DNA of 64,000 bases from Oopsacas minuta (taxonomy: Eukaryota > Animalia > Porifera). The notes beneath the pieces were generated by a model. It made no database searches, was not told where the DNA came from, and saw only the letters and a list, made by a program, of their open reading frames with translations. The stretch's first letter is position 1. Every line of letters starts with the position of its first letter. The position numbers and the translations under genes are program-made. Positions 3-35,119 of the stretch are shown piece by piece. The stretch is taken from contig JAKMXF010000221.1 of NCBI GenBank assembly GCA_024704765.1, forward strand, positions 186,001 to 250,000. The letters run 5' to 3'.

Positions 3-3000
3 TCTATTCTCTCAAATATTTGTTATTCTGAATGTTCGTTCCTGCAGCAACTCGCTGGTCTTGAAGAATCATTTGCTCATGGATTACAGAAACTCCTCAG
101 GAGTGCTTCTTACACGCTACACTCCAACACTCTCATGCAGTGGTTAGGACAAGATCCTTTCGAAGAGACAGGGTGATCACAATTAAATACTTTAAGCTCA
201 AATGACTGTTTTGAATACCGTTATATTATTTTTAGTACTTTAAAAGAAGCTTGGAATTTAATTGGAGAATGCCTTTCTCTCACTGCTAAGCATCATCTCG
301 AGAAGGTAGCTACGAATATACATGTTACTGGTACAAGAATTATAGAAATAAGAAATATATTAATTGATATTATTCAGGCTTATTTATTGAAACAAACTGT
401 CGCAGAACCTCTCAGTGAGACCAAACAACAGTTAGATGATATTAAGAAGCAAGTATGTTATATATTACTGAACGGATAATTTGTGTTACTTTTCCGTTTC
501 GTTAGAATCTTAAAGAAACAAAGTTTGCATCGACAAAGAAACTAAAGCAACAGTTGAAAACAGTGAGTATAATTGTATAATATATTACTCCTGATGTTAT
601 GCATCTGTCAATCTAGGAAAAATTAAAGTTTGAGGCGATTACTACAGAGTATAGCAAACTGAGAGGACAACTTGATTTCCCAGGTAAATCCATTTTATAT
701 TTGATTACTTGCTAGCTAGAGTGAACACGTTATTTTCTTCACTTCTTTCCAAAGAAAGAGTGGACAGGATGTCATCTAAGAATCCTCAGAAGGTTTGATC
801 TACTATACATATAATTATATTTTATATTGCATCTTTCTTTTTCCCTTTGAATGTGTTAATTGTACGTTTACACGTATTTTATTGCTACATATTCTGGGGA
901 AATTGGGAGAAGGTGACCCTGTTCATTATATTTGAACCGCATTAGCTTGAAGAGCAGATTAATGTTATTGAAGCACAGCTCCAAGATCAAGAACATCTGT
1001 AAGTTTATTATACGCACACATCTGATGTTTACTGTAATAATTATTATATGGATGTTTTGTTAGATGTACAAAATTGAAACAAGAATACATCATAGCGGAA
1101 AGAGGGGCTAATCTCCAACTTGAATATGTTTACAATGTGAGTGGGCTATTTTTGCATAAGATATCATATCTTATCAGTATATGAGTAATATCACAGTATA
1201 AGAGTAATATCAAAGTACATAAGTAATATCATATAAGTAATATCTTTGAAATAGTTATCACATGTAACTCCCAATTACATAAGAGAAATTTGTGATTATA
1301 ATTATTACCACAGCATGTAATCAAATTACTTTACGATTTTTCCCTTTTCAATGTTGTATATATGATAAATCATATAACTATTCTATCGATTTTTAGCTCA
1401 GAATGAATTATACACGAATCCACCCTAAAATAATTTTGACAGTATTCTCAATTTCTCTTATTATATGTATCGTATTATTAATATTTTATCTTTTCTGGTT
1501 TGTTTATTTCGCGAACGAGGTGCGTTACTTGAAGAAGAAGTTGTGGAGGATAAAACAGGGACGTAGCAATTATGAAAATGACACTCTTTTTATCAAATAC
1601 GAATCTGAATATATTAAGAACAGACTCATGTTATTCGTGACTATTCTTGAACCATTATCCTTTCTTCCAACATTCATAGAAATATTAACTCAGGAATTTT
1701 TTATGGATCCTCTGGAGCAAAGAGAAATTCTAATTAAATGGGTGTTAATTTTAAGTCAGAATGTTTGGTTTTCTCTCACATCCATCATCTACTTAACTTC
1801 GATCTACTTACTCAATCTGCTAACATTTTACCAGATTAACCTACTGCAGAACACGAATGATATAACTTTATTAAAACGAAAACTACGACATTTATTAATA
1901 TTTTCAATTATCCTCGTAGTCATGGCTTTTAGTGTAATTGCCTCCATTATCTCACAGTTTATTGCCGTAGTCCTTATTTCATACTATACGGTTACTCTGA
2001 TCAGGAAAGCGAAGTGTCTTTATACCTTGTTGAAGTTCCGTTACAAAGATTCACTCTTGCATCATAATAATATCCCTCTCCAGAGAGCTCAGATGAAGAT
2101 TGCATTCCGTTATAAGTACTTCAATATCCTCTTACTGACTGGCTTCTGTATTTTATTCGTTTCACTTTGGGTGAATTTCTTCACCGCTTTATTATCCGTT
2201 TTCAGATATCCCTCTTTTCATAGATTCATTAAAATACATAGTCCTGAGACCATTAAAGTAATGATTGATCTTATAGAAGTAATTCGCATGCTTAATGTAA
2301 CTATAGATTTTCTAGCTTTTTCAATACTAATACCCACATTGATTGTATTTACTATTATTTTTATATCAAAAAGTTTTAAGAAAACTTATTATTGATTTGC
2401 TGTTTGTTTGGATATTAACTGAATTAAATTATATTAATAGACAATACATGATTCTGAGTGGATTAGAATATCGAAAATTAGGACTTCTCTAGTTGAATTT
2501 TCAAAGTGAGTTCTTAACAATTTGTACTATTTATGAAATATTTATTTATTAACAAAAACAATAGGGTCTATTCAAATACTGGTCCTGTCTACCTTCAATA
2601 TTGTCAGAAACTTGCTCTACGTATGTATGACATAGATGCAGGCAAAGACATTCATGAATTTGTACTGGCTCATGAACAGTTTATTTATTCTCAAAACTCA
2701 GAAACTAATAATTTTGAGGTAATATTATTCTAGAATTCATTTATTATATTATTTATTTCCGTTTGCATAAAATTTGTTCATTTTAGGATTTGAACAGTCA
2801 TCCAACAGGTAAATAATAAATATACACAAATTGGTTAGGTGTTATGTGTATTTATTTCTAATTAAACAGATTGCATTATTAAGAAATCTCCAAAGAATGT
2901 TTCCAGCTCTAATTCTCATCCGCTGACTCATTCTGATAAAAGAGATTTCTCTCCAAAGGAGGACACACCTGGTAATACAATTTCTAAGAAACCACCATCT

Positions 3001-10221: not shown

Positions 10222-13200
10222 ATGGCAGAAGTTAGTGGAGACAGGAGACGTATCCTCATTAAGGGGGGTACCGTTGTAAATGATACTCACATGAAGAAAG
10301 CAGATGTGTTTTGCGAAGATGGACTCATCAAACAAGTCGGAGAGATAGGTAACCATTATTTAATTGAAGCTCACTATTTATGGTGTTAATTGTATGATTC
10401 ATTTAGGTGATGTCCCTTCAGATACTCAGGTAATAGATGCAGCTGGTAAATGGGTGATACCAGGAGGTATAGACACCCATACTCATATGCAGCTACCCTT
10501 CATGGGGACAGTTGCTGTGGATGATTTCTATATCGGAACTCGTGCTGCTCTGGCTGGAGGAACTACTTTCTTGATTGACTTCGCTATCCCAATGAAAGGT
10601 GTCCGTCCATTGGATGCGTTCAAGCAGTGGAAGGGATGGGCAACCCCTAAGGTGTGCTGTGACTACTCGCTACATGTTGCCATCACTTGGTGGAGTGATC
10701 AAGTAGGGAAGGACATGGAAGTGTTGGTACGAGAAGAAGGGGTTAACTCTTTCAAGATGTTCCTCGCATATAAAGATGTGTTCCAGCTCAGCGATCATGA
10801 GCTTATACAAGCATTCAAAGCGTACGTTAATCTTACTTAGAAAACACAATATTAAATATTCGATACTACAGTGCCGGTCAAAAAGAATTGCTCAGAATAA
10901 ATTTACCCCAAATTCTTATATCTATGACTGATTTTAACAATAATGCTTTATTATAATCAAGTAAATTGTTGTTAGTATTTAGTAGTACCTCCTCTTGCTT
11001 GAATTACAGCTTTACATCTTTGCGGCATACTCTCAATTAGAGTATGGAGCCTGTTAATGTCGATGCTATCCCAAGTGCTTAATATGGCATTCCACAACTC
11101 TGAGTGGTTGGATGGGCTTTTCTCTTGAATTCTGAGGGAGATGTGATCCCAGAGATTCTCAATCGGATTTAGATCAGGTGACTGAGCAGGCCAATTCATA
11201 ACCTCTATTTTTTGCTCACCAAACCATTGCTTAGTACCCTTTGACTTATGGCATGGGGCGTTGTCTTGCTGAAAGGTCCAGTCAGAATGTAGAGAATGCA
11301 AATCAACGCTTGGGATTAGTGCATTTTCCAATATATCAATGTAGGAATTTGTCTTGAGGTTCCCAGATACTTTCCACAAGAGTCCTACGCCACTCCAGCA
11401 AAAGCATCCCCAAACCATGATGCCACCTCCACCAAACTTGCAAGTTTTTTGAAGACACCTCTCTGAGAACTCCTCCCCTTTCATCCTCCTGACGTAGGCT
11501 CTCCCGTCATTAGTATACAGAAGGAACCTAGATTCGTCACTGAACACCACTCTTGCCCATTCTTCAGTATTCCAATTCTTGTGCGATCTTGCGAAGGAAA
11601 GTCGGTCTCTTTTGTGCTTGGTAGTAAGGCGGGGCTTCCTTCGCGGTTTTCGTCCGAACAGTCCAGCCCCTCGTAACCTTCTCTGAACTGTTGAAGTGGA
11701 AAGTTTTATCGAATATTCTGATAACACTTCAGCTTTGATCTGAGTAGCAGTCTTAAATCGATCCTTTTTGCATTTTCTGACCAATAAATTGTCTTGCCTT
11801 TTGGTTGTGACACGAGGCCTACCCGGAATAGCGAGGTCTCTTACCGTGCCAGTCAGCCTGTGTTTCTTAAGGATCTCGGCTACACTTTTTTGGCTACACC
11901 CAACCATTTTAGCTACCTCCCTCTGAGTATGGCCACTTTCTGAAAGTAGGATCAGGTTGGCTCGATTTTCAATGGAAATTCGGGGTTTAGAAGGTATTGA
12001 AAATTCGATAAAAACAGATAAATTGGAAAAAAAAGAATACAAAATAAAAACTGTAAGTTGTGCAAATATAATGAATGGATTAGCTGTGTTGGTGTGTTAC
12101 TTGTCAAAATACATACGGCTGAGTATGGTTTCGCAAGAATTCAACTATCTGGTCAGTGTATACAATTTGACATTTACTATACTGTATACATTCATTTTGA
12201 GCAATTCTTTTTGACCGGCACTGTATATTATTTTGCTATTTCCTTAGATGCAAATCAGTAGGTGCTTTGGCACAGGTTCACGCAGAGAATGGAGATTTGA
12301 TTGCAGAGCAAGCAGAGAAAATGGTGAAGTTAGGGATAACAGGTCCAGAAGGTCATGAGATGTGTAGGCCTGAAGAAGTAGAGGGCGAAGCTACCAACAG
12401 AGCTATAGTCATTGCACATGAGGTCAGATTTTCTTATTTTATCAATTATTCAGTCTTTTGTAGTGATTATGCAATATTACAAGAGTACATGTTCTAATTG
12501 TAATTATTCAGAACTATTAAGTAGCTAGTAGACACAATTCCATGATTACATGTACGTTTGTATGAACTATTGTAATTATGCACTATTGAGTCTAACCAAA
12601 AGATAGGCGAGTTGATTTTGGCGTTCAGCATTTGTAGCTTGTTTGTGCTGAGCTAGTCACTATGAAGACATATACCTATGTAGGTCAATAGGTCGTTAAT
12701 TATTTATCCCAAACTAAATAAATAATAACATGTTTGTATAATTATTGTTTTCGATAAGTGATATTGGTTGCCATCAAATATCCAAGAAATAATCGAGAAA
12801 CAAAATAACAGCCGTTACAAGATAATAGTTTATCTGTTACACTCTCTCTTCACTGTTCCATTTTCTTCAGATAAGCTCCAAGATTTCAGCTGTGTACGAT
12901 TGTCTGACTGTATATTAGTCAGTTTCTTTCAGCCTTATCCTTATCTGTTGTTCGTGTGGAGTGACAATTGAACGTTACAGATCCGTTATAATTGATTGAT
13001 GCTACATCTCTAACTTCCATGTAATACATGAGAGAAGTTTATGCATAAACTTCGTTCTGATTTGATCCTATTTATACTCTTTCCAGAGTTTCCAATGCTA
13101 TTGTGATTGAATAACAACAATTGACAGTTTGACTATTACAATAATACACTTTACTCAGACACCCATGCGCGAATCTATTCTTTAAAGTATTAAGACATAA

Positions 13201-20152: not shown

Positions 20153-23100
20153 ATGTCCCGGATAATTCTATGTGGAGCGAATTCAGTTGGTAAGACAACT
20201 CTTGCCCAAGACTGGTGTTCTATGAACAAGAATTATCAAATTTGTTGTAAGGTTAGAAGAGATGTTATGGTTGAACACAAAATATCTTCAGAAGATATCC
20301 ACAATTCTTTAAGATCATGTAAGAAGATTTTCTTTAAACTTCAGAGATTAATATTTGAGGAACAGTATAGGAGAGAGAGTCAGCTAGGAGATGCTCTATA
20401 TATTTGTTCCCGAGGACCAGAGCCTCTAGTTGATGCATTCTTAGAAAACTCTCGGAAAGCAGACATTCTCTCTGAGCAAGAGATTGTGAAGAAATGTCTA
20501 GATCGTTATCGAGCTAGTTTAGTAGTCCTCTTGTGTCCGCTAGAGAATGCTCCTGAACACGAGATACTGCCAGACTCTACGAAAACTATGCCTATCTCCC
20601 TGTTTGAGGAGCAGAAGCGTTTCACAAAAGGGCTACATGACACGATGACAACTTTCGGTATACCTTATATGTATATGGACGAGAGGGATCGCGAGAAGCG
20701 AGTTGAGATACTCAAGTTAGCTGTTGAAGGTACAGTCCCGATCCCCATAGAACAGTTCATGGATCAGCGCTGTCTCTCATTCTTCCTCGATACTGGAACT
20801 AAGAGACGAGCTACTTTTCCACCGCCTCTACTCCCTCTTCCCAAACAAGGTAAAGAAGATCGAGTTCGTACATTCGACTTAAATCCAGGTGAAATTCTCT
20901 TGAGTTACCCTCCAATGGATAGTTTCCAGACAAACAGAATGGTAGACAGGTATGGAGAGGATAATTTCGTTCTCCTTCAGTTCCACTCAAAGTTACCTAA
21001 CAGTTACATCAGAGATGTCCTCCGTAAAGGAGTATATGTGAACGGAGATGAGTTCCAATTCCTGGGCTGTAGCTCCAGCGGATTGAAAGGCAGGAAATGT
21101 TATCTCCTGAAAGGTAATATAGAAGATGTACGAGTTGTTCTGGAACAGTGTGGGAACTTCTCTAAGATTAAAATGGTGTCCAAGAGACTGAAGAGGATTA
21201 GTCAGCTGTTCTCTGTAGCTATGAAAACGGGTGTAATGGTCCCTGATGATAAAGTGGAAGATATTGAGGACATAGAGACATCAGGGGGGAACTTTACAGA
21301 TGGGTGTGGATTAGTTGGACTAAATCTTGCATCAAAACTTGCTAAAGGCTGCAATGCACTAATTGAGTGTCCAGAAGATGGAGTACCCACCGTTTTCCAA
21401 ATACGATTTCTTGGCTGTAAGGGTATTCTAACGAAGAGCCCGCATATTGATACAGATTCTATGAAAGTCAGAAAATCTATGAGGAAGTTTAGCTCTGGGA
21501 CAGAGCCTTTCCCTGAAGTCTGGGTATGTGAACATTCTCGCCCATACTCCTATGGACATCTCAATAAACAGTACATAATGTTGTTATCTGGACTAGGGAT
21601 ACGTGATGAAGTATTCCTCACTAAACAAGCTGACTATTTGAAAGCGCTAGAGAGTATGTTGATTGACCCTAGCTTTGCTATCACAATACTTAATTGGCGG
21701 AATCGTCCTGATTTAGCTGCATTTGTTGCAGAACGTGAAACCTTTGCAGAATTCAGGCGAGAAGATATTCAGAATCAGCTGAGATATATTAGAAGCAAGC
21801 TAATCCTCAAGTTAGAGAAATTGAGTATACCTATCCTTGATTCTCGTACCCTGTTCGGTGTATGTGACCCTCTTAATCTGATGGAGTATGGTGAGTGTTT
21901 TATTAGAATTTCAGTTCAGGGTAAGCCTCAAACTCTACATCCCGGTACTAAAGTAACTGTCGGCAAGAATCCATGCTATCTCCTTGGTGACGTCAGAGTT
22001 CTCACAGCTGTAGATCATCCAGAACTCAATCACCTGATTGATTGTATGGTATTCCCAGTTAAAGGTAGAAGTCCTCATTCAGCAGAGATAGCTGGTTCGG
22101 ATCTGGACGGTGACCAGTATTTCGTGTGCTGGGATAAAGATCTCATCCCTCCCCACACAGTTGAACCCTACGACTACCCATCAGTAGAGGCTCACCCCTC
22201 TGACACTGTCACCCGGGAAATGATGATAGACTACTTTTCGGGACAGAAGAACATGATGGGTAAAATAAATGACTACTATGAGTATTGGGCAGATATTGAG
22301 GGGCCAGGGTGTTTTCAATGTGAACAACTTGGAGCTTGGTTCTCAAGGAGTGTAGACTCCTCTAAAACTGGAGATATCGTACGTATTCCACGTCACCTCA
22401 TCCCTCCTCAGCGTGAGAGAAAATCTGATAAAGTTTGGGTGAGGATGCAAGAGATCGCAGCTGATTGTAAAGAAAGGCTGAGTGGAGATACAGCTGATGA
22501 AATTTTAGAAAATTCAAGTTCTGCTTATGTCATTGAAGAGGATTTTATCAGGAATCTCTTAGAGAATACAAAAAGAGGAATTTCTGAATACAAACTATTC
22601 TCTTTGTTATATAAATGGTGCGACGCACAGAAAATCTCTAGAGATGAAAGGAGGGAAAAGCTGATCGAACTTTCTGATTATATCAACTTTGGTTTGTTGA
22701 CAATGAAAGAGAGAGAAGAAGCTATTCAATTGGGTATACCTGTTGCTAATGTCATGAATGCATTGAGTAAGTCTCGACTCCTCAATAAAGAGATGTTACA
22801 ACCTTTCTATCTGGACATTCCTACTTGTGGATGGAAATTTTACTTCCGAGGAAGTACAGCTAATCTTGACTGGAGACATATCTTCTATGCAATGACAAGT
22901 TATCCCGAAACTTTGCTAGTATTAAAACTCCCATATTATGGCGAAAGATTAGCTTTTCATTTAATCGGGACATTTGAAGATGGAGAGTCTATAATCCCTA
23001 AAGGATCAATCATTTCCTACTTTTTCTCCCCTCCATTTGGGTATAATCTAAGATATGTCACTGAGTGTGATTATAATTTGAATCTCACCCCACATATGAT

Positions 23101-26100
23101 ACAAATCTATCGCAGTGATGTTAGAAACACATTTTTGTGGCTAAAAAATGAATGTAGAAGTGATTCAGGTTCAGAATATGATAGAATCAGTATTGATCTA
23201 ACGAGATTTAAGAGAACTATTAGACGAGTAGATAAACACCCTCTTATTCTAAAACTTAATTTCCATTCTGTGGAGGTATTCGTCAAGAGTAATAATATTG
23301 AAGATACGGTATACTTTGATATACTAGAAACAGATCAAGTTGAGCATATAGTTACTACTGGTATTGAGTCATCTGATATTCTCGAAGAGTTACCTAGTGA
23401 TTCTGAAGAGGAAAGAGAAGAAGTTGATCCCTCTAAGTATACGCCATATGCACCTGAAACTTCACTATTAGCTCTTAAGGAATTTGCTAAGAAAGGAGAC
23501 TCTGTGAATTTCCGCAAAGTAATCACAATAATTCCCTCACCTACTCCTGAAATACCACAATTCCCTCGTACTTTATTAACCGAAGAGATCCTTTCTCTCC
23601 TGACTAATATGGTAATTCACCAATCCCATAGAAAAACATCAGAATCAACAATTGAGGATTTGTACGCAATATTTAAATCCGATCATATAGCTATCCCATC
23701 TGCCAAAGACTTACTATTCCTGTTCACTTGTCTTAGCAAGTTACAGCTATTCGATATGGCCACACAACTATCTGATAAACTTATTAGCAAAGTTGACTTG
23801 TCAGGGATTGCTCAGTATTTTGATACTATTTTCCATTGGGAATGGTGGTGTTTCTTATCGCTAAATCTAGCTTGTGAACTGTCAGATAAACTGTATCTTA
23901 TATCTTGTAAACTTGATGCTGGTAAGAAACCAGCTGAGAACACACAGAACACTGATGATTTCGAAACTAACCCCGATCTACTCCAGAATTTAGCTGTAGC
24001 AGCTAATGATGATCCTCCACCTTTAGAAGAGATAGAGCTCAATAACTACAAGCGTTATTATGCATATCTTATGTTAAAACATTTATTAGAGGAAACTCCT
24101 GGAAGAGAAGAAAATGAGAAAGTAAAAGACACTGAAGACAGTGTGTGTATGTTACGAGTACTGCATTCAGAAGATAGACGTGTTAATGTAGAGATAGATA
24201 GTAGTAGTAGTAGTAGTAATGAAGAAGAGAACGAGGAAACTGTTCCAGTTAAACAAGTCAAGAAGAAAAAGAAGAAAAAGTCTAAAACCTGGAAAGCATG
24301 TTTTTCTAGAATCAATAAAGTAACATCCAATAAATTTTCAATAGGTTCATTTGTAAAGATCCGTCTAATGAACAGACTTGCTACAACTCACTCCGGTGAG
24401 CCTATAGCTCTCGGATCTATCTCTGTATATCACAAGAGCCCGGCGGATATCATCGTTGATATACTGGAGCCTGTACCCGAGGCTATTAAGAGAGCTGCTC
24501 GCCTCAAGAAGGGATTCTGGTGTCTGACTCTACTAGGTAATATCACAAGCTTTAAGAGATCAAGCAAAGCTTTACAGAACTTATACACTCCTGGTATTCT
24601 TTCAATCCTAACCTCTCCTCAAGCATTTCCTCCCACAATAGCACCTAAAGATTATGAAGTGGACTTCTTAGCTGTCTCTCCTGATCCCGTAGAGTTACCT
24701 GACAAGAGCACCCCAATACATAACCCCTACCACTCATACAAGGGTTGTACTGCTTGTGAGCGTAGAGATAAAACCCGCTACAATCAGAGTCAAGAGAATG
24801 CGATCCAAGCAGCCCTCACTCAACGACTGATATTAATACATGGCCCCCCTGGTACAGGTAAGACATTTGTTGCTTGTGAGATTGTACATCAGTTATTTCA
24901 TGAAATGAATAAGCAGCCGGATAAAGATGAGAAGTGTAAGATCTTAGTAGCAGCTGAAACCAATAATGCCGTAGATAACCTCACGTATAATCTCGTTAAG
25001 TTAAACATGCGTGTAGTACGTGTTGGCAATAAGAATCAAATTGGTAAGCATTTACATGATTACTCATTGGCTCATCAAGTAGAGATGAAGCGGATTCAGC
25101 TGGGTCAAGACAAGAAAGGAGAGTATCAGTGCCCAAAGTTGAAAAAGGAGATCTTGAATTCAGTGGACATAATAGCTACAACCTGCACTGGGGCAGGTGA
25201 TAATGATCTTAAAACTCTTCAATTTTCTTGTATACTTATCGATGAGGCTACTCAAGCAATAGAGCCAGTTTCGCTGATCTCAATAGCTAAGTCTTGTAAG
25301 AAACTTATACTTATTGGAGATCCTAAACAACTTGCACCGATACTCCCTAGTAACCGTGAATCTCGAGGGCATACTTGTCCTGTAGAAGTTCCTCGCTTTG
25401 AGGCTTTGTGTGAGACTTTGTTTCATAGACTCCACAAAAATATAAAAACATACTTTTTGGATGAACAACACCGCATGCATCCTTATATAGCTGATTTCCC
25501 TTCTAAAGTATTCTATTCAGGAAAGCTGAAAACAGCTGTGAGGAAGGAAGACAGGATAGCACCCAAGCTAGGATTCATGACTTCAAACAAACCTATCGTA
25601 TTTATAGATGTAGACCACCCAGAGCATCGTACTGGATCATCAATCAGGAATGAAAGGGAAGCTGATATTATAGTGGATATTATCAAACAGCTGACTGGAC
25701 TAGCGAAATATAAAGATACAGAAATCGCAATTCTAACTCCCTACACAGCTCAGGTTAAATGCTTAAAAGAGAAACTAGCTTTAGTTTCTAAAGTTGAGGT
25801 ATCTTCTATTGACGCATTCCAAGGCAAGGAGAAAGAAGTTATTGTATTCAGTACAGTAAGGAACAATGATAATGGAGTATTAGGCTTCACAGATAGTCCA
25901 TATCGGATTAATGTACTGCTAACCAGAGCTAAATGTGGTCTTATAGGAGTAGGTAATAGAGATACCCTTAGAGGTTCAAATATTTGGTCAGAATGGACTT
26001 TTCAACACACTCTTTTGACTGTAAGGGAGTTTTATGAGAATGCAACTGTAAATGTAAATGAGGATGATGAAATTCCTAACCAAAATAACAATAACTCTAG

Positions 26101-26338
26101 GAGAGGTACACGATCTAGAGGCAGACCTCAGGGCTACCAGAATTCCTCCAGAGACAGAAATTTGACCCATGTACACCAGAGACATAGACCTAATATTGGT
26201 TGCTTTGTATCGGATACACTACGCTCACATAGACGTTTTAGAGATAACTACCGTGAAGATATCCATTGGAGAGATGTCCCTGTAGATTATTATAAGACTC
26301 CACGCAAGAGCGAGGATAAAGACTGGGAAAAGAATTAG
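20153..26338 (+). CDS. 2061-aa fusion: AAA_28/NadR-like P-loop domain + cellular RNA-dependent RNA polymerase + BACK-like helical region + Upf1-like SF1B helicase; intronless
   Basis: Walker A GANSVGKT (aa 8-15). RdRP motifs FTDGCG, QIRFLGCKG, KNPC, GSDLDGD (DLDGD at 22100-22114). Helicase motifs GPPGTGKT (24842-24865), TNNAVD, IDEATQ, GDPKQL, QHRMHP, TPYTAQ, FQGKEK, NVLLTRAK. Confidence 0.93.
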   Translation: MSRIILCGANSVGKTTLAQDWCSMNKNYQICCKVRRDVMVEHKISSEDIHNSLRSCKKIFFKLQRLIFEEQYRRESQLGDALYICSRGPEPLVDAFLENSRKADILSEQEIVKKCLDRYRASLVVLLCPLENAPEHEILPDSTKTMPISLFEEQKRFTKGLHDTMTTFGIPYMYMDERDREKRVEILKLAVEGTVPIPIEQFMDQRCLSFFLDTGTKRRATFPPPLLPLPKQGKEDRVRTFDLNPGEILLSYPPMDSFQTNRMVDRYGEDNFVLLQFHSKLPNSYIRDVLRKGVYVNGDEFQFLGCSSSGLKGRKCYLLKGNIEDVRVVLEQCGNFSKIKMVSKRLKRISQLFSVAMKTGVMVPDDKVEDIEDIETSGGNFTDGCGLVGLNLASKLAKGCNALIECPEDGVPTVFQIRFLGCKGILTKSPHIDTDSMKVRKSMRKFSSGTEPFPEVWVCEHSRPYSYGHLNKQYIMLLSGLGIRDEVFLTKQADYLKALESMLIDPSFAITILNWRNRPDLAAFVAERETFAEFRREDIQNQLRYIRSKLILKLEKLSIPILDSRTLFGVCDPLNLMEYGECFIRISVQGKPQTLHPGTKVTVGKNPCYLLGDVRVLTAVDHPELNHLIDCMVFPVKGRSPHSAEIAGSDLDGDQYFVCWDKDLIPPHTVEPYDYPSVEAHPSDTVTREMMIDYFSGQKNMMGKINDYYEYWADIEGPGCFQCEQLGAWFSRSVDSSKTGDIVRIPRHLIPPQRERKSDKVWVRMQEIAADCKERLSGDTADEILENSSSAYVIEEDFIRNLLENTKRGISEYKLFSLLYKWCDAQKISRDERREKLIELSDYINFGLLTMKEREEAIQLGIPVANVMNALSKSRLLNKEMLQPFYLDIPTCGWKFYFRGSTANLDWRHIFYAMTSYPETLLVLKLPYYGERLAFHLIGTFEDGESIIPKGSIISYFFSPPFGYNLRYVTECDYNLNLTPHMIQIYRSDVRNTFLWLKNECRSDSGSEYDRISIDLTRFKRTIRRVDKHPLILKLNFHSVEVFVKSNNIEDTVYFDILETDQVEHIVTTGIESSDILEELPSDSEEEREEVDPSKYTPYAPETSLLALKEFAKKGDSVNFRKVITIIPSPTPEIPQFPRTLLTEEILSLLTNMVIHQSHRKTSESTIEDLYAIFKSDHIAIPSAKDLLFLFTCLSKLQLFDMATQLSDKLISKVDLSGIAQYFDTIFHWEWWCFLSLNLACELSDKLYLISCKLDAGKKPAENTQNTDDFETNPDLLQNLAVAANDDPPPLEEIELNNYKRYYAYLMLKHLLEETPGREENEKVKDTEDSVCMLRVLHSEDRRVNVEIDSSSSSSNEEENEETVPVKQVKKKKKKKSKTWKACFSRINKVTSNKFSIGSFVKIRLMNRLATTHSGEPIALGSISVYHKSPADIIVDILEPVPEAIKRAARLKKGFWCLTLLGNITSFKRSSKALQNLYTPGILSILTSPQAFPPTIAPKDYEVDFLAVSPDPVELPDKSTPIHNPYHSYKGCTACERRDKTRYNQSQENAIQAALTQRLILIHGPPGTGKTFVACEIVHQLFHEMNKQPDKDEKCKILVAAETNNAVDNLTYNLVKLNMRVVRVGNKNQIGKHLHDYSLAHQVEMKRIQLGQDKKGEYQCPKLKKEILNSVDIIATTCTGAGDNDLKTLQFSCILIDEATQAIEPVSLISIAKSCKKLILIGDPKQLAPILPSNRESRGHTCPVEVPRFEALCETLFHRLHKNIKTYFLDEQHRMHPYIADFPSKVFYSGKLKTAVRKEDRIAPKLGFMTSNKPIVFIDVDHPEHRTGSSIRNEREADIIVDIIKQLTGLAKYKDTEIAILTPYTAQVKCLKEKLALVSKVEVSSIDAFQGKEKEVIVFSTVRNNDNGVLGFTDSPYRINVLLTRAKCGLIGVGNRDTLRGSNIWSEWTFQHTLLTVREFYENATVNVNEDDEIPNQNNNNSRRGTRSRGRPQGYQNSSRDRNLTHVHQRHRPNIGCFVSDTLRSHRRFRDNYREDIHWRDVPVDYYKTPRKSEDKDWEKN

Positions 26339-26550: not shown

Positions 26551-27939
26551 ATGCAACTACATACGTTCCTTACACTTCTTTTGGTATGTCAAACACTGAG
26601 CTTATCAACTGGTGCCAAGCCTGTTTCTAACTCTAAGCTCTCCAGCTCGAATAACTGTTCCATTAATAATGGAGACTGTTCAAGTTGTCTCAGTCAGCTC
26701 AACTCGCAACATCTTGGCCTATGCGGTTATTGTCAAGCATCAGATGGTAACTGCTCTGACCCCTCTCGTTGTCCTTGTTTAGCAGGAAGCTTGTATGGAC
26801 CGAAGGATTCCAATTGCGAAGAATCCATATCCATTTGGTACTATGAAGCTTGTCCCGACCAGCCTACAGACCAAACATCTACCTACACAGTCTCACTACG
26901 ACTCCTAAACGTAGCTGCAGTAGATCTTATCGCTGGTACCTTTGGTGCAGATTTTCTGATCTACTTCGAGGGTAATCGGGTTGCGTACACAGATAGAGAA
27001 TGCAATTCAGACAATGGTGTATGTTTCAATATTCTTAACTCAGTAGGAGCTCCTATAATCGTAAAGTATCAAACTTATTTCCATATACAAGGCACGTTCT
27101 CATTTGAAGTTGATCTAGCAGATTATCCGTTTGACAATCAGACTCTACCTCTATTGATACAGGACTCATATAGTTCTGCATTAAAATTACAATGGAAATT
27201 GCCTAAAGATGATAAGACGGGAATTGATTCACATCTCACTCTTTCAAGCTGGTATTATGACAGTAACTCATGGGATGACTCTTTGTATCAGCGATACAAC
27301 CCAATCCTGGATGAGAACTTTTCAACTTTCGTCTTCAAGTTCCTAATACAGAGACCTCGGGCAGTTGGATTTATCAAGGGACTACTACCCCCTCTATTTA
27401 TAGTTTTGGTGATTTGTGCATCTTTCTCACTACCAGCTAAAGAGATGAGCAGTCGTATCTGGATAGGAGGTTCTCTACTTATATCTGTTGTCTTGTTCCA
27501 CTCTACCTTAGCAGAAGAAACTCCACGAAAAGGACAGCTAACGTTTGCTGATAACTTTATAATATCAGTCTATGTATTCATATTCATTTCACTTGCAGTT
27601 AACATCGTTATTATAAGGCTGTTCCGGTCTGGAGCAGAGAAACTAGCTAGCAAAATTCAACACTTGACTGAGATCATCTCATGGCCTGCTTTGTTCATTT
27701 TCTTCTTTGGACATTTCTACCTAAAATGGAATACATTCCTTGTTCTCTTTCTTGTTGCTATGTCCTCTCTGCTTATACTATTGTGTATATTTGTCATAAA
27801 GATAGTATCCTCAAGGACTAAACTAAAATGGCGCAAGTCATGTTTGAGAATGAGACAGAATCAAAATAAATACAAAGATAAGGAAGGAATCGTGAATGAG
27901 GGAACTTCTTCCTTCCTGCGAGAAGGGAATGTCCTCTGA
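26551..27939 (+). CDS. Cys-less (Pro-loop) pentameric ligand-gated ion channel subunit with signal peptide, Cys-rich PSI-like N-terminal module and five predicted TM helices
   Basis: Signal peptide, then CSSCL...CGYC...C. Ligand-binding-domain strands VDLIAGTFGADF and GTFSFEVDLADYPFDNQTL. M1 LLPPLFIV, M2 SRIWIGGSLLISVVLFH, loop TPRKGQLTFAD, then M3, M4 and an extra TM. Confidence 0.8.
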   Translation: MQLHTFLTLLLVCQTLSLSTGAKPVSNSKLSSSNNCSINNGDCSSCLSQLNSQHLGLCGYCQASDGNCSDPSRCPCLAGSLYGPKDSNCEESISIWYYEACPDQPTDQTSTYTVSLRLLNVAAVDLIAGTFGADFLIYFEGNRVAYTDRECNSDNGVCFNILNSVGAPIIVKYQTYFHIQGTFSFEVDLADYPFDNQTLPLLIQDSYSSALKLQWKLPKDDKTGIDSHLTLSSWYYDSNSWDDSLYQRYNPILDENFSTFVFKFLIQRPRAVGFIKGLLPPLFIVLVICASFSLPAKEMSSRIWIGGSLLISVVLFHSTLAEETPRKGQLTFADNFIISVYVFIFISLAVNIVIIRLFRSGAEKLASKIQHLTEIISWPALFIFFFGHFYLKWNTFLVLFLVAMSSLLILLCIFVIKIVSSRTKLKWRKSCLRMRQNQNKYKDKEGIVNEGTSSFLREGNVL

Positions 27940-28982: not shown

Positions 28983-30890
28983 ATGATTCTATTGTTATCA
29001 GGTTTTGTTGTTGGAGCAATATCAGCTGCATTTGTGTTTCCTCTTCTCTGCTCTGTGGTGAAGGCTCTATTGGGTATTGGACCTTCCGGCAAGGTACAAG
29101 TAGCTCCTCCTATCCAGGAGGTGATTGATGCAGGAGGTGGTGAGTATCGCAGTGAGGAGCATTTTGCTCCTAAATTAACAGGGAAGTTGTTTTTATGGTT
29201 TAGTAACTTCATGTGGACTCCATTTGGTAAAGAATGGGTATTAAGTAAGTTAATGCGAGACAATCATCTGTTTGATGCTAGAGAACGCTATCTGCCTGAA
29301 GCAGCTACTTTCTATCCCACTCCTCCGTTTATTCCCTTCCCTGAACAAAGTGTGAGGGAGGATGGGAAGAGTGAGAAAGATGAGATTGATACTCTGATTG
29401 GTTGTGTTCCTTCTCGTTCCAAAGATTCCTCTGCTGAGACTGATGAGTTTGTATTCCCTAGTATCCTGGATTATCTACATGCATATAGATGTGGTCGTGT
29501 GACACCTGTAATAGTAGCAGAACGGATAATTGAAAGTATTCGAGCATCTGATTCTCTATCTCCTCCTCTGCGTGCCTTTGTTCAGTGGAATGAGACTGAG
29601 ATTCGTAAACAAGCAGAAGAGTCTACACGGAGATACAGAGATAAGGATAACATCCGTCCTTTGGAAGGAATACCTGTTGGAGTAAAAGAGAGTATACCAA
29701 CTAAACCTTACATCCTCAGAGTTGGATCTAGTTTCCTACCAATAGGTGCACAAGCTATCTCAAACTGGGAAGAGGCTGAGGTTGTGTTAAGACTGAGACA
29801 AGCTGGCGCTATAATTATTGGAGTTACTAATCTGCATGAATTTGGTGTGGGACCTTCTGGATCTAATGTAAATAAGCTGCATCAAACAGCTCGTAATCCT
29901 TATGACATGAGTAGATATCCAGGAGGGAGTAGTAGTGGATCTGGTGCAGCTGTAGCTTCTGGATTAATCCCTCTTGCTTTGGGGACAGATGGAGGAGGAT
30001 CTATCCGTATTCCTTCTTCTATTTCCGGTCTTGTGGGCCTCAAAGCTACATTTGGTAGAGTTACGGAAGGTAAAATGATAAGCAGTGCTCCCACAATCAC
30101 TAACATAGGACCCTTGTGTACTTCAGTTGTAGACACAGCTCTGTCATATCTTTTATTAGCAGGCCCTGGTCCTAATGATCCTAACGGTCTCCAACAAGGT
30201 CCTGTCACTATTGGCAACTTTCTAACTGCTAAAGATAATGCTAAGGGAATGAAGGTTGGTATTTATCGAGCTTGGTTTAATCACTGTGAACCTGATGTGT
30301 CCAAAGTGTGTCAGGAAGCTCTGAAGTGGATTACAGATGCTGGCGCTGAATTGGTAGATATACATATTCCAGAAATGAATGCTACTTATATATCTCTTGT
30401 TTCTATTTTCCTAAGTGAATTAACCAGCGCTTACAAATACGATTTTTATGACCATTTCAAAGATATCAATAGTGACACTAAACAGAATCTAGCAATTGGT
30501 GATGCTATCTCATCTGCGGACTATACAGTAGCGAGTAGGCAAAGAACACGGGCTATACAGGTTCTGAAGAGTGTATTTTCTAAGGTTGATATACTCGTTA
30601 CCCCCACTACTGCTTGTACTGCTCATATTATGAGTCCCAGCCACTTATCTCATGGCTGTGCAAATATTAAGACTACTACGAAACTAAGTAGATTCACTGT
30701 AATAGGAAATCTGACAGGAGCGCCTGCAATAGCTATACCAGTGGGATATGACTCAAACAACCTTCCTGTCTCTCTGCAACTTATGACTAGGTGGTGGAGG
30801 GAAGATCTATTGTTCATGTTAGCTAGTCAGATCGAGAAGAGAGTAGCTAAAAGGAAACCAAAGATATTTTATGATATTCTGCAACTATAA
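28983..30890 (+). CDS. Fatty-acid amide hydrolase-like amidase, copy 1
   Basis: Amidase-signature triad: PVGVKE (Lys), GGSSSGS, GTDGGGSIRIP. The start may instead use a short upstream exon (acceptor at 29001). Confidence 0.9.
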   Translation: MILLLSGFVVGAISAAFVFPLLCSVVKALLGIGPSGKVQVAPPIQEVIDAGGGEYRSEEHFAPKLTGKLFLWFSNFMWTPFGKEWVLSKLMRDNHLFDARERYLPEAATFYPTPPFIPFPEQSVREDGKSEKDEIDTLIGCVPSRSKDSSAETDEFVFPSILDYLHAYRCGRVTPVIVAERIIESIRASDSLSPPLRAFVQWNETEIRKQAEESTRRYRDKDNIRPLEGIPVGVKESIPTKPYILRVGSSFLPIGAQAISNWEEAEVVLRLRQAGAIIIGVTNLHEFGVGPSGSNVNKLHQTARNPYDMSRYPGGSSSGSGAAVASGLIPLALGTDGGGSIRIPSSISGLVGLKATFGRVTEGKMISSAPTITNIGPLCTSVVDTALSYLLLAGPGPNDPNGLQQGPVTIGNFLTAKDNAKGMKVGIYRAWFNHCEPDVSKVCQEALKWITDAGAELVDIHIPEMNATYISLVSIFLSELTSAYKYDFYDHFKDINSDTKQNLAIGDAISSADYTVASRQRTRAIQVLKSVFSKVDILVTPTTACTAHIMSPSHLSHGCANIKTTTKLSRFTVIGNLTGAPAIAIPVGYDSNNLPVSLQLMTRWWREDLLFMLASQIEKRVAKRKPKIFYDILQL

Positions 30891-31050
30891 ATTATGATAT
30901 TTATTTATCGTTTGTAAATTGAATGTGGAATGTTGTGGTACAAAGTTTATTGTATACAATTATTAGCTTTCTCATCTTTATTGCATTTTTGAGTCCAAAT
31001 TATGATTAAAAAAGTTGTATATTTTAACGAAAATATTATTAGCTTTTGAT

Positions 31051-32955
31051 ATGGGGCAGTATATGTCATTTGTTGTTGGAGCAATATCAGCTGCATTTGT
31101 GTTTCCTCTTCTCTGCTCTGTGGTGAAGGCTCTATTAGGTATTGGGCCTTCCGGTAAGGTACAAGTAGCTCCTCCTATCCAGGAGGTGATTGATGCAGGA
31201 GGTGGTGAGTATCGCAGTGAGGAGCATTTTGCTCCTAAATTAACAGGGAGGTTGTTATTGTTTTTAAGCCGTTTCTTGTGGACTCCATTTGGTAAAGAAT
31301 GGGTATTAAGTAAGTTAATGCGAGACAATCATCTGTTTGATGCTAGAGAACGCTATCTGCCTGAAGCAGCTACTTTCTATCCCACTCCTCCGTTTATTCC
31401 CTTCCCTGAACAAAGTGTGAGGGAGGATGGGAAGAGTGAGAAAGATGAGATTGATACTCTGATTGGTTGTGTTCCTCCTCGTTCCAAAGATTCCTCTGCT
31501 GAGACTGATGAGTTTGTATTCCCTAGTATCCTGGATTATCTACATGCATATAGATGTGGTCGTGTGACACCTGTAATAGTAGCAGAACGGATAATTGAAA
31601 GTATTCGAGCATCTGATTCTCTATCTCCTCCTCTGCGTGCCTTTGTTCAGTGGAATGAGACTGAGATTCGTAAACAAGCAGAAGAGTCTACACGGAGATA
31701 CAGAGATAAGGATAACATCCGTCCTTTGGAAGGAATACCTGTTGGAGTTAAAGAGCACTTTCTCACTAAACCATATATTCTTCGAATTGGTTGTGAATTT
31801 GTTCCGACAGCAGCTCATTGCTTGGACGGTAAACCTGACAGTGCAGCTGTTATACTAATGCGAAATGCTGGAGCTATAATAGTTGGTGTTACTAACATCC
31901 ATGATAATGGGATTGGAGCTACAGGTTCGAATCCTAACAGTCTGCATCTAACCACCCGTAATCCATATGATCTACACAAGTACTCAGGAGGTAGTAGCAG
32001 TGGGTCTGGTGTCGCTGTGGCTTCTGGACTCGTTCCCCTCACACTGGGGACAGATGGAGGAGGGTCAGTTCGTATCCCTGCTGCTCTTTGTGGGATTGTA
32101 GGACTCAAACCAACTTTTGGAAGGATTTCCGAGGTACGCATGGTGCCTGCTGCATTTACCTTGGCTCATCCCGGACCAATGTGTACCTCCGTTGTAGACA
32201 CAGCTCTATCATATCTTCTGTTAGCAGGCCCTGATCTTAATGAACCATACGGTCTCCAACAAGGTCCTGTCACTATTGGTAAGTTTTTGACAGCCACAGA
32301 TAGCGTGAAAGGAATGAAGGTTGGAATTTATCGAGCTTGGTTTAATCACTGTGATCCTGATGTGTCCAGAGTGTGCCAGGAAGCTCTGAAGTGGATTACA
32401 GATGCTGGAGCTGAATTGGTAGATATACATATTCCAGAAATGAATGCTACTATTCCTGCATGCGTTTCCACTTTTTTGACAGAAATATTGAGTGTGTATC
32501 GCTATGATTTACCAACAAGGTTCAAACAGTTATTTGGGGAAACACTGACTAGTATGGGTGTTGCTAGTCAAGTTTCAGCGGCAGATTACACTGTAGCAGG
32601 TAGACAGAGAACTCGTGCTATCAAAACGCTAGAACATGTTTTCAAACAAGTTGACTTTATAGTTACTCCTACTACTGCTGGGACTGCTCACACTATCGCT
32701 TTGAAAGCTGTTGCATATGGTGAGAGTAATATCGATTTCATAGCCAAATTAACTAGGTTCACTATGCTAGGAAATCTGACAGGAGCGCCTGCAATAGCTA
32801 TACCAGTGGGATATGACTCTAGCAATCTTCCTGTCTCTCTGCAGCTGATGACTAGGTGGTGGAGAGAAGATCTATTATTCATGTTAGCTAGTCAGATCGA
32901 AAAGAGAGTAGCTAAAAGGAAACCAAAGATATTTTATGATATTCTACACTCATGA
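31051..32955 (+). CDS. Fatty-acid amide hydrolase-like amidase, copy 2
   Basis: Same triad intact. First ATG at 31051, alternative at 31063 (the track start is TTG). Confidence 0.9.
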   Translation: MGQYMSFVVGAISAAFVFPLLCSVVKALLGIGPSGKVQVAPPIQEVIDAGGGEYRSEEHFAPKLTGRLLLFLSRFLWTPFGKEWVLSKLMRDNHLFDARERYLPEAATFYPTPPFIPFPEQSVREDGKSEKDEIDTLIGCVPPRSKDSSAETDEFVFPSILDYLHAYRCGRVTPVIVAERIIESIRASDSLSPPLRAFVQWNETEIRKQAEESTRRYRDKDNIRPLEGIPVGVKEHFLTKPYILRIGCEFVPTAAHCLDGKPDSAAVILMRNAGAIIVGVTNIHDNGIGATGSNPNSLHLTTRNPYDLHKYSGGSSSGSGVAVASGLVPLTLGTDGGGSVRIPAALCGIVGLKPTFGRISEVRMVPAAFTLAHPGPMCTSVVDTALSYLLLAGPDLNEPYGLQQGPVTIGKFLTATDSVKGMKVGIYRAWFNHCDPDVSRVCQEALKWITDAGAELVDIHIPEMNATIPACVSTFLTEILSVYRYDLPTRFKQLFGETLTSMGVASQVSAADYTVAGRQRTRAIKTLEHVFKQVDFIVTPTTAGTAHTIALKAVAYGESNIDFIAKLTRFTMLGNLTGAPAIAIPVGYDSSNLPVSLQLMTRWWREDLLFMLASQIEKRVAKRKPKIFYDILHS

Positions 32956-33211
32956 AGTTATTACCAAATCACTCTATGCACTGAATTGAACCTTTGTAGA
33001 ATTGTTACTAACTCATTAGTAACTAACTTCTATATCGAAATTGGATGTATTTATTTATTTTTTATGATATATATTGTATTTTGTATTATCTTTTGAATAT
33101 TCAGTTCTGCTTCACTTCATTAATATAATATACTATAAGTTATGATAATTATGAAATTTGATTCTCAATCTCAGATATTCAACACAGGTAAATATATTTC
33201 AGAGCTCATTT

Positions 33212-35119
33212 ATGATATTCTACATTTCATTTGTTGTTGGAGCAATATCAGCTGCATTTGTGTTTCCTCTTCTCTGCTCTGTGGTGAAGGCTCTATTGGG
33301 TATTGGACCTTCCGGTAAGATACAAGTAGCTCCTCCTATCCAGGAGGTGATTGATGCAGGAGGTGGTGAGTATCGCAGTGAGGAGCATTTTGCTCCTAAA
33401 TTAACAGGGAAGTTGTTTTTATGGTTTAGTAACTTCATGTGGACTCCATTTGGTAAAGAATGGGTATTAAGTAAGTTAATGCGAGACAATCATCTGTTTG
33501 ATGCTAGAGAACGCTATCTGCCTGAAGCAGCTACTTTCTATCCCACTCCTCCGTTTATTCCCTTCCCTGAACAAGGTGTGAGGGAGGATGGGAAGAGTGA
33601 GAAAGATGAGATTGATACTCTGATTGGTTGTGTTCCTTCTCGTTCCAAAGATTCCTCTGCTGAGACTGATGAGTTTGTATTCCCTAGTATCCTGGATTAT
33701 CTACATGCATATAGATGTGGTCGTGTGACACCTGTAATAGTAGCAGAACGGATAATTGAAAGTATTCGAGCATCTGATTCTCTATCTCCTCCTCTGCGTG
33801 CCTTTGTTCAGTGGAATGAGACTGAGATTCGTAAACAAGCAGAAGAGTCTACACGGAGATACAGAGATAAGGATAACATCCGTCCTTTGGAAGGAATACC
33901 TGTTGGAGTTAAAGAGGAATATCTAGCGAGTAATTACAGACTTTTGAATGGTTTGTCATTTTTGCCAGTTTGTGCTCAGAATCTAGACAGAAAACGACAA
34001 GATAGTGAGCCTGTTGCCAGACTTAAGAATGCTGGAGCAGTCCTTATAGGCATTACTAACATGCATGAGATTGGTATAGGTTCTTCTGGATCTAATGTAA
34101 ATAAGCTGCATCAAACAGCTCGTAATCCTTATGACATGAGTAGATATCCAGGAGGGAGTAGCAGTGGATCTGGTGCAGCTGTAGCTTCTGGATTAATCCC
34201 TCTTGCTTTGGGGACAGATGGAGGAGGATCTATCCGTATTCCTTCGTCGCTGTGTGGAATTGTTGGGCTGAAGCCAACTTTTGGGAGAATATCTTGTGCT
34301 AGAATGTGTCCAGTTGGAATGACTGTCGTTAATGCTGGTCCCATGTGTAACTCAATACAAGATGCAGCTCTCGCATATTTGTTGTTATCAGGACGTGACC
34401 CTGAAGATGTGAACACTGTACAACAAGGACCTGTATCCCTAGACCAGTATCTAGACCACAGTCCTGATTTAACTGGCCTGAAAGTAGGCGTGTATGATAC
34501 ATGGTTCAATCACTCTGATCAAGAGGTGAGGTCTGGATGCAGGACTGCTCTCACTTGGCTGCAAGAAGCTGGTGCTGAGATTGTAGAGATTAAGATTCCA
34601 GAGATTTCTCAGTCTCAAAACGCTCATCTTGTTGCACTGTTATCAGAGTTACTCGCTGCTTATAGATATGACTTCCCTGAACATTTCAAGGCATTCAATA
34701 GAGAGTCTATCCTGGGTTTATCATTGGGTACAACTTTGTCAGCAGCTGATTATGTAGTAGCAGGACGCCAGAGAACAAGAGCTATAAAGGTTTATGACCA
34801 TTTATTTAAGCGAGTTGATATCATTGCTACACCTACCACTGCTCGCACTGCCCCAGTTATCCCTCAAGGAGCTGACCTATACGGAGAAAGTAACCTACAG
34901 AATACTCTTAAGATTGCTCGTTATACTATACAATCTAACTTAACTGGTGTGCCTGCTATTTGTCTACCCGTGTCTTACGATGCTAATAACATGCCTATCT
35001 CCCTCCAGCTGATGTCAAGTTGGTGGAAAGAAGATCTCCTATTGCATGTTGCAAGTGTAGTAGAGAATCGAGCTAGGAAGATGAAACCTAAGCTCTACTA
35101 TGATATTCTTAACATGTAG
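33212..35119 (+). CDS. Fatty-acid amide hydrolase-like amidase, copy 3
   Basis: Same triad intact. First ATG at 33212 (the track start is TTG). Confidence 0.9.
   Translation: MIFYISFVVGAISAAFVFPLLCSVVKALLGIGPSGKIQVAPPIQEVIDAGGGEYRSEEHFAPKLTGKLFLWFSNFMWTPFGKEWVLSKLMRDNHLFDARERYLPEAATFYPTPPFIPFPEQGVREDGKSEKDEIDTLIGCVPSRSKDSSAETDEFVFPSILDYLHAYRCGRVTPVIVAERIIESIRASDSLSPPLRAFVQWNETEIRKQAEESTRRYRDKDNIRPLEGIPVGVKEEYLASNYRLLNGLSFLPVCAQNLDRKRQDSEPVARLKNAGAVLIGITNMHEIGIGSSGSNVNKLHQTARNPYDMSRYPGGSSSGSGAAVASGLIPLALGTDGGGSIRIPSSLCGIVGLKPTFGRISCARMCPVGMTVVNAGPMCNSIQDAALAYLLLSGRDPEDVNTVQQGPVSLDQYLDHSPDLTGLKVGVYDTWFNHSDQEVRSGCRTALTWLQEAGAEIVEIKIPEISQSQNAHLVALLSELLAAYRYDFPEHFKAFNRESILGLSLGTTLSAADYVVAGRQRTRAIKVYDHLFKRVDIIATPTTARTAPVIPQGADLYGESNLQNTLKIARYTIQSNLTGVPAICLPVSYDANNMPISLQLMSSWWKEDLLLHVASVVENRARKMKPKLYYDILNM

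Follow-up and report, generated by a model that had tools for sequence, protein, structure and literature searches.

The 64,000-nucleotide window analysed here (positions 186,001 to 250,000 of contig JAKMXF010000221.1) comes from the glass sponge Oopsacas minuta and contains, among ordinary animal genes, a single-exon gene that joins a cellular RNA-dependent RNA polymerase (RdRP) to an Upf1-like helicase of superfamily 1B (SF1B) in one polypeptide. It is an open question why scattered lineages of animals have kept cellular RdRPs and what these enzymes do in them. The RdRPs of fission yeast, Neurospora, plants and nematodes need Upf1-like SF1 helicases that are encoded by separate genes: Rdp1 is paired with Hrr1 (together with Cid12) in the RDRC of Schizosaccharomyces pombe, SAD-1 with SAD-3 in N. 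crassa, EGO-1 with ZNFX-1 in Caenorhabditis elegans, and RDR6 with SDE3 in plants. The initial annotation of the locus regarded the sponge protein as a possibly novel fusion of two such partners. We find that the O. minuta gene is an intact new member of a known, little-studied family of RdRP-helicase proteins.

The open reading frame (ORF) begins with ATG and has no internal stop in its 2061-residue translation, as first reported, and a single gene is called at the locus on the record, which belongs to the whole-genome project JAKMXF of O. minuta (PMC10280926); the surmise that the DNA derives from an early-branching animal was also right. The start codon is correct, because the homologues open with the same MxxIxLCGxxSxGKT. 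Pfam places the RdRP family PF05183 at amino acids (aa) 247-752 (E-value 9e-109; 365 bits against a cutoff of 23.8), the pair AAA_11 (E 4e-45) and AAA_12 (E 3e-52) across aa ~1544-1936, and AAA_28 at aa 3-183 (E 1.5e-8; 35.4 bits against a cutoff of 27). The DLDGD catalytic loop of the polymerase is intact, and helicase motifs I, II, III, V and VI were all located, in agreement with the initial annotation. The gene is a single-ORF fusion of a cellular RdRP, catalytically intact by its motifs, with an intact Upf1-like SF1B helicase.

Four sequencing runs of one sample hold the stretch contiguously; in run X1 it lies on a single contig of 8,959 nt with 0 differences, and in runs X3 and X4 it is tiled by contigs. 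In run X5, whose source is a relative with about 96% identity, the differences are confined to substitutions and to indels that add up to multiples of three. The type of the five runs is not on record. They look like DNA, with contigs of up to 107 kb that have Nextera adapter ends and pass through intergenic regions without a change in depth, and they back the assembly only, not transcription. Logan contig L001 of a relative (6,985 nt), although of transcript size, carries a complete 2097-aa ORF and no poly(A) end, and is unusable as cDNA evidence.

Another glass sponge possesses an ortholog (P0002, on contig L006) that is 75% identical over its full length and in frame, and the gene order around it is shared: Peptidase_M24, the RdRP-helicase gene, a downstream 462-aa ORF, NIF and amidases. 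The fusion, for which misassembly had been named at the outset as a possible refutation, thus survives that check in both the independent contigs and the syntenic ortholog. The ratio of non-synonymous to synonymous substitution rates (omega) between O. minuta and its glass-sponge ortholog is about 0.07 overall, rising from 0.04 in the RdRP and 0.06 in the barrel through 0.11 (helical domain) and 0.21 (N-terminal domain) to 0.54 in the tail, which is the least constrained part of the protein; synonymous divergence is near saturation and these values are rough. The active sites of polymerase and helicase are intact and under strongly purifying selection. The gene resembles its neighbours in composition, no direct or inverted repeats of note flank it at the locus, and we conclude that it is an intact, vertically inherited, single-exon gene of O. 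minuta.

Table 1. Features of the RdRP-helicase gene of O. minuta, in coordinates of the protein and of the window.
Feature	Amino acids	Nucleotides	Strand	Basis and remarks
Whole single-exon gene		20153..26338	+	2061 codons and stop; ATG start; ORF list and translation
N-terminal NadR/AAA_28 nucleoside-kinase-like P-loop domain	1-210	20153..20782	+	Pfam AAA_28, Atlas, Foldseek
N-terminal P-loop GANSVGKT	8-15	20174-20197	+	Motif scan
Cellular RdRP core	235-885	20855..22807	+	PF05183; RDR2 best solved-structure match
RdRP catalytic loop DLDGD	650-654	22100-22114	+	Motif scan; SDLDGD is aa 649-654
TLDc-like beta domain	886-1050	22808..23302	+	Foldseek, family profile, Pfam TLD, Atlas
Acidic disordered linker	1051-1095	23303..23437	+	pLDDT <50 in both models; includes SDSEEEREEVD
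All-helical domain	1096-1329	23438..24139	+	High-confidence helices in model mde243d989f54
1B-type beta barrel	1330-1461	24140..24535	+	Model; disordered Ser/Glu/Lys-rich loop at aa ~1345-1378
Upf1-like SF1B helicase core	1531-1960	24743..26032	+	AAA_11 and AAA_12; Upf1 best by sequence and fold
Helicase motif I GPPGTGKT	1564-1571	24842-24865	+	Motif scan
Helicase motif II DEATQ	1697-1701	25241-25255	+	Motif scan
Helicase motif III GDPKQL	1722-1727	25316-25333	+	Motif scan
Helicase motif V QGKEKEVIVFSTVR	1890-1903		+	Motif scan
Helicase motif VI VLLTRAK	1921-1927	25913-25933	+	Motif scan
Basic Asn/Arg-rich disordered tail	1961-2061	26033..26335	+	Low pLDDT
Tail stretch NNNNSRRGTRSRGR	1978-1991		+	Motif scan

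Structure models were built from 93-sequence alignments for two overlapping segments of the chain, aa 1-1150 (predicted local distance difference test, pLDDT, 85; predicted template modelling score, pTM, 0.80) and aa 1000-1990 (model mde243d989f54; pLDDT 86, pTM 0.86). They divide the protein into eight parts (Table 1), and in both models folded, high-confidence domains fill the space between polymerase and helicase. The 1B beta barrel described initially is predicted and aligns to the 1B and stalk region of Upf1, and the tail was correctly called disordered, its pLDDT being below 50. The initial list of modules was sound for the RdRP, the helicase and the tail; AAA_28 was named there only as something to check, and the TLDc-like domain was missed. 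The helical domain has no match in Pfam or NCBIfam, and NCBIfam returned no matches on the N-terminal and middle regions. In orthologs the tail is alike in composition and poorly conserved in sequence; true RGG-rich tails occur in some relatives (for example P0017), and many members of the fusion family have no tail or a different one.

The polymerase belongs with a particular group of cellular RdRPs. Its best solved-structure match is RDR2 (fold E 1e-34, compared with 1e-27 for QDE-1), its best matches in AFDB are RDR1/2/6 and Rdp1, and both fold and HMMER score set it far nearer to RDR1/2/6 and Rdp1 than to QDE-1 or RDR3-5. In a tree of the RdRP domain, for which alpha-type enzymes (plant RDR1/2) and animal RdRPs served as references, a long stem (SH-aLRT 99) leads to a single clade of the fusion proteins and their short forms, separate from plant RDR1/2, an RRM-RdRP of a homoscleromorph sponge and a coral RdRP. 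Within it, a glass-sponge subclade that includes the O. minuta protein has 100% support.

The helicase half finds Upf1/NAM7 as its best solved structure by sequence (2e-56), followed by ZNFX1 (2e-39), Sen1/SETX, IGHMBP2 and DNA2. Upf1 also comes first in the fold search, in which the top 11 reviewed proteins are all UPF1 orthologues, and the barrel and helicase region, stalk included, aligns with NAM7 residues 223-870. The best NCBIfam model is the IGHMBP2 family, below its cutoff, and the nearest standalone helicases are an HCS1/IGHMBP2-like group at 36-37% identity and UPF1 at 33-35%. In a tree of the helicase core the animal and diatom fusion helicases are one clade (support 98) outside the UPF1 clade (97), and the fungal fusion helicases are another (98); the deep nodes are weakly supported, and the two fusion clades are not sisters in the free tree. 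Constraining all fused helicases to a single clade costs 2.8 log-likelihood units and is not rejected (approximately unbiased test, p 0.43). The simplest reading is a single ancient fusion with later losses and fissions, for which only the polymerase half gives positive support. Two diatom members, P0084 (Seminavis) and P0085 (Amphora), fall beside or inside the animal clade in both trees, a position that may stem from horizontal transfer, contamination or old paralogy.

By sequence, fold and tree, then, the helicase is an Upf1-like SF1B enzyme that is neither UPF1 nor specifically of the ZNFX1/Hrr1 kind. Orthology with UPF1 was rejected on its position outside the UPF1 clade and on the CH zinc-knuckle domain (PF09416), which UPF1 has and for which the sponge protein gives no Pfam match. 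An affinity with ZNFX1 or Hrr1 is unsupported, given the weaker match to ZNFX1 than to Upf1, the lack of a zinc-finger match in Pfam, and the place of Hrr1 outside the top 30 reviewed matches. The initial assignment to an Upf1/Hrr1/ZNFX1 class consequently holds at the level of the superfamily, and its suggestion of kinship with Hrr1 and ZNFX1 gives way to Upf1 and the IGHMBP2/HCS1 type as nearest relatives.

Past the end of canonical RdRPs the chain continues into a domain (aa 886-1050) that Foldseek aligns with the TLDc domain of zebrafish OXR2 (4ACJ; TM-score 0.68 by target, root-mean-square deviation 4.3) and also, at probability 1.0, with NCOA7, OXR1 and Skywalker/TBC1D24. A family profile searched against all PDB sequences returned three chains only, all of them TLDc, at sub-threshold E-values of 0.18-0.55. 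Pfam TLD (PF07534) is the most frequent weak match of the family (11 of 71 members, best E 0.0035) and gives no match for the O. minuta protein itself; 98 of the 100 nearest Atlas clusters are TLD. The domain thus shares its fold with the TLDc proteins (OXR1/OXR2, NCOA7, TBC1D24/Skywalker and mEAK7; TM-score 0.5-0.68 by target), whereas similarity in sequence is marginal. Residues S1013 and E1041 are invariant across the family, and this TLDc-like variant is confined to the present RdRP clade, with 238 cluster representatives among 1.84 billion proteins. V-ATPase binding is a known function of TLDc domains, and in the sponge protein the TLDc-like domain and the basic tail probably set RNA or organelle localisation. 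A large clade of proteins of ~960-1000 aa (P0155-P0176, including P0161, and P0187) has the same type of RdRP and the TLDc-like domain without a helicase. With these proteins in the clade, the TLDc-like module may predate the helicase fusion there; loss of the helicase would be the other possibility.

The N-terminal 210 residues fold like the kinase domains of NadR, deoxyadenosine kinase, thymidylate kinase and shikimate kinase (Foldseek), and by language-model features their nearest neighbours are AAA_28 'NadR/Ttd14' clusters (Atlas score 0.96). Animal and diatom members of the family carry this domain; fungal members do not. Most members that have it conserve the P-loop, E75, an 'SD-GPDP' motif and a 'DDGxR' motif. 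In O. minuta the P-loop and E75 are kept, SD(86) is replaced by CS and DDGxR(133-137) by APEHE, and the closest orthologs vary at the same sites. Within its own glass-sponge subclade the domain evolves faster than the rest of the protein, and 11 of 16 listed codon changes relative to a close relative are non-synonymous. Since the SD and DDGxR motifs are lost, omega is higher and most of these changes alter the protein, the domain has probably ceased to be a kinase and survives as a remnant that binds nucleotides or has a regulatory role. No paper that we found reports a TLDc or a NadR-like module for cellular RdRPs, and within the literature searched both modules are new to the description of these enzymes.

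The architecture is widespread. A full-length search returned 468 significant proteins; among the best 120 nearly all combine an RdRP with AAA_11/AAA_12, and most of the animal members among them also carry AAA_28. About 115 full-length homologues share the same domain order, nearly all of them keeping DLDGD, GPPGTGKT and DEA(T/S)Q. Members include Oopsacas (a paralog), the sponge Ephydatia (P0060), the sea anemone Actinostola, the diatoms Seminavis and Amphora, a green alga, and many ascomycetes and basidiomycetes, Fusarium graminearum (FGSG_09076) among them. The crinoid Anneissia has an RdRP with AAA_11/12, and bdelloid rotifers have shorter AAA_28-RdRP forms. The paralog, P0016, lies on another contig of the same genome under the public name 'Regulator of nonsense transcripts 1 [Oopsacas minuta]'; it has SSLGED as its polymerase loop and DDATQ as helicase motif II, and the loops of its orthologs in other glass sponges (P0025-P0027) are likewise degenerate (PHYGGD, PHLDRD and PHSDGD). 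Judged by these residues, P0016 looks like a conserved, polymerase-dead partner.

Several characterised systems invite comparison. In Dictyostelium, RrpA-C unite a Dicer-type helicase of superfamily 2 (SF2) and a cellular RdRP in one chain. In these Dicer-type fusions an SF2 DExD/H helicase lies at the N-terminus and a tailing enzyme at the C-terminus, whereas the sponge protein has a C-terminal SF1B helicase and an RdRP of a different clade. In RDRC, SAD-1/SAD-3, EGO-1/ZNFX-1 and RDR6/SDE3 the partners are separate, while in the sponge the helicase is fused and nearer to Upf1/IGHMBP2 than to ZNFX1; furthermore RDRC includes Cid12, and the sponge chain is without a nucleotidyltransferase. The closest studied counterpart is FgRdRp5 (FGSG_09076, P0090) of F. 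graminearum, whose additional helicase domains were noted in a 2024 study that placed it on a branch apart from SAD-1, RRP-3 and QDE-1 (PMC11237814). Its deletion lowers exonic small interfering RNAs (siRNAs), impairs ascospore maturation and discharge, and is accompanied by changes in ribosome-biogenesis genes (PMC11237814). In FgRdRp5 and its fungal relatives the RdRP, TLDc-like region, helical region and Upf1-like helicase follow one another as they do in the sponge protein; FgRdRp5 shares the RdRP clade of the sponge protein (SH-aLRT 99) and retains DLDGD, GPPGTGKT and DEASQ, but it is ~30% identical over 37-39% of the query and has no N-terminal NadR-like domain. A candidate RdRP of amphioxus, BL02069, carries AAA_12 according to a figure legend of Pinzon et al. 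2019, who found no secondary siRNAs in that animal and argued that animal RdRPs are functionally labile (PMC6396948); by that description it is an animal RdRP with the C-terminal half of the same helicase type. FgRdRp5 and the amphioxus protein are the only mentions of the fusion that we found in the literature on the family. The initial caution that fungi or amphioxus might share the architecture was therefore justified, and the fusion is not novel, being common to sponges, a sea anemone, a crinoid, diatoms and fungi, with one member, FgRdRp5, genetically characterised in part; a common and already characterised architecture was among the grounds for refutation that the initial annotation itself had named.

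Ordinary animal genes surround the fusion, each of them in one long ORF: PTPA, a methionine-aminopeptidase-type peptidase, a NIF phosphatase, three amidases, TMEM144, UBA3, an SH2/PTB adaptor, RanBP2, Mat89Bb and dynein. The 462-aa ORF directly downstream (26551-27939, plus strand) is syntenic in the other glass sponge (L006, 12342-13901) and has no Pfam match; weak pointers suggest a fold like that of pentameric ligand-gated ion channels (pLGICs; Atlas 0.86, TM-score 0.55-0.61 to prokaryotic pLGIC-like clusters). The three amidase genes (PF01425; 635-653 aa each) stand in tandem at 28983-35119 on the plus strand, after the NIF-type phosphatase, an order that is kept in the other glass sponge. 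An intact-looking Tc1/mariner transposase ORF (10975-12042) with HTH_Tnp_Tc3_2 and DDE_3 domains lies on the minus strand, some 8 kb upstream of the fusion gene.

Enzymes of family PF05183 start without a primer or from a 3' end when they copy single-stranded RNA, and Upf1-like helicases translocate 5'-to-3' on RNA, stripping it of proteins and structure. The sponge gene belongs to an old, patchily distributed RdRP clade, the 'FgRdRp5 type', and on balance we lean towards the reading that its product would make endogenous small RNAs through helicase-coupled copying. The helicase would load onto a single-stranded target RNA and spend ATP to strip away structure or proteins, either running towards the 3' end, and so delivering the polymerase, or releasing the product; the polymerase would then begin unprimed synthesis of the complementary strand; and the double-stranded or antisense product would enter the Dicer/Argonaute machinery of the sponge, yielding endogenous small RNAs of genic or transposon origin. 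An endogenous output is proposed because knockout of FgRdRp5 lowers exonic siRNAs (PMC11237814).

Some observations weigh against this reading. No virus-derived small RNAs were found in a demosponge (PMC6085071), nor RdRP-dependent secondary siRNAs in amphioxus, which has an AAA_12 RdRP (PMC6396948); the phenotype of FgRdRp5 mutants is partial (PMC11237814). The N-terminal domain looks catalytically impaired in this protein. Searches of sequencing runs for evidence of transcription yielded none, all five runs looking like DNA. Finally, the helicase moves 5'-to-3' and the RdRP reads its template 3'-to-5', which does not permit simple joint travel on one template. The Rosetta-stone logic of the initial annotation is reasonable, since in other systems the RdRP acts together with an SF1 helicase from a separate gene; the specific coupling is something we infer, given these opposed polarities.

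To our knowledge every known function of a PF05183 enzyme lies in small-RNA pathways, which counts against the less probable but serious alternative that the sponge protein is active outside RNA interference (RNAi), in RNA surveillance, decay or remodelling, where translocation with RNA synthesis or tailing would mark aberrant RNAs and no Dicer-dependent small RNAs would arise. This alternative draws on the functional lability of animal RdRPs and the lack of secondary siRNAs in amphioxus (Pinzon et al., PMC6396948), on the lack of virus-derived small RNAs in an RdRP-bearing demosponge and in a sea anemone (PMC6085071), and on the altered ribosome-biogenesis genes of the FgRdRp5 mutant, but in the same mutant exonic siRNAs do fall (PMC11237814). 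The nearest helicases, UPF1 and the IGHMBP2/HCS1 type, point towards this alternative too, as they are enzymes of RNA quality control and not ZNFX1 or Hrr1. A dedicated antiviral or anti-transposon amplifier of secondary siRNAs, with an RG-rich tail that would target it to RNA granules, was the role first suggested for the protein; we consider it improbable. The intact RdRP and helicase would suit such a role, as would the basic disordered tail (with true RGG-rich tails in relatives such as P0017) and the analogy with EGO-1/ZNFX-1 and Rdp1/Hrr1. Against it, the short tail is under weak constraint and many members have another tail or none, and selection on the protein is strongly purifying overall, not the arms-race pattern typical of antiviral factors; moreover, the demosponge and the sea anemone gave no viral siRNAs even after polyphosphatase treatment, in libraries able to capture 5'-triphosphate RNAs (PMC6085071).

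That the gene is cargo or a relic of a mobile or horizontally transferred element is very improbable. The patchy distribution across animals, fungi, diatoms and a green alga, the nesting of diatom members beside animal ones and the transposase 8 kb upstream are all compatible with such an origin, but the synteny with host genes kept between two glass sponges refutes it for this locus, and the matching composition, the want of notable flanking repeats and the fully supported glass-sponge subclade, which mirrors vertical descent, agree. The chance that misassembly, or a stop codon lost to sequencing error, made one gene out of two neighbours is practically negligible: we found no evidence in its favour, and it is refuted at the DNA level by identical sequence in independent contigs of four runs, and opposed by the ~115 homologues of the same domain order, a syntenic ortholog included, and by the confidently folded domains between polymerase and helicase. 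More speculatively, and with little credence on our part, the family might represent an undescribed fourth kind of eukaryotic RdRP machine, in whose ancestor a nucleoside-kinase-like NTPase, a polymerase, a TLDc-like domain and an Upf1-like helicase were joined; the TLDc-like domain would dock on endolysosomal membranes that bear V-ATPase, and glass sponges would pair the active enzyme with the polymerase-dead paralog P0016. If this were true, RNA would be copied at the sites through which foreign or imported RNA comes into the cell.

With an architecture so widespread, and with one member already studied, the finding counts as progress in annotation and does not amount to a new kind of system; what the analysis adds is a full map of the modules, the TLDc-like and NadR-like domains, and a conserved paralog whose polymerase site is, by sequence, dead. 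For the glass sponge it means that an intact, strongly constrained polymerase is kept with its helicase partner in the same chain, and the fusion supports the idea that Upf1-like helicases are obligate partners of RdRPs. The TLDc-like and NadR-like modules are leads on localisation and regulation, and the family as a whole, with members in genetically tractable fungi too, brings unwinding and RNA copying together in one compact protein in which their coupling can be studied.

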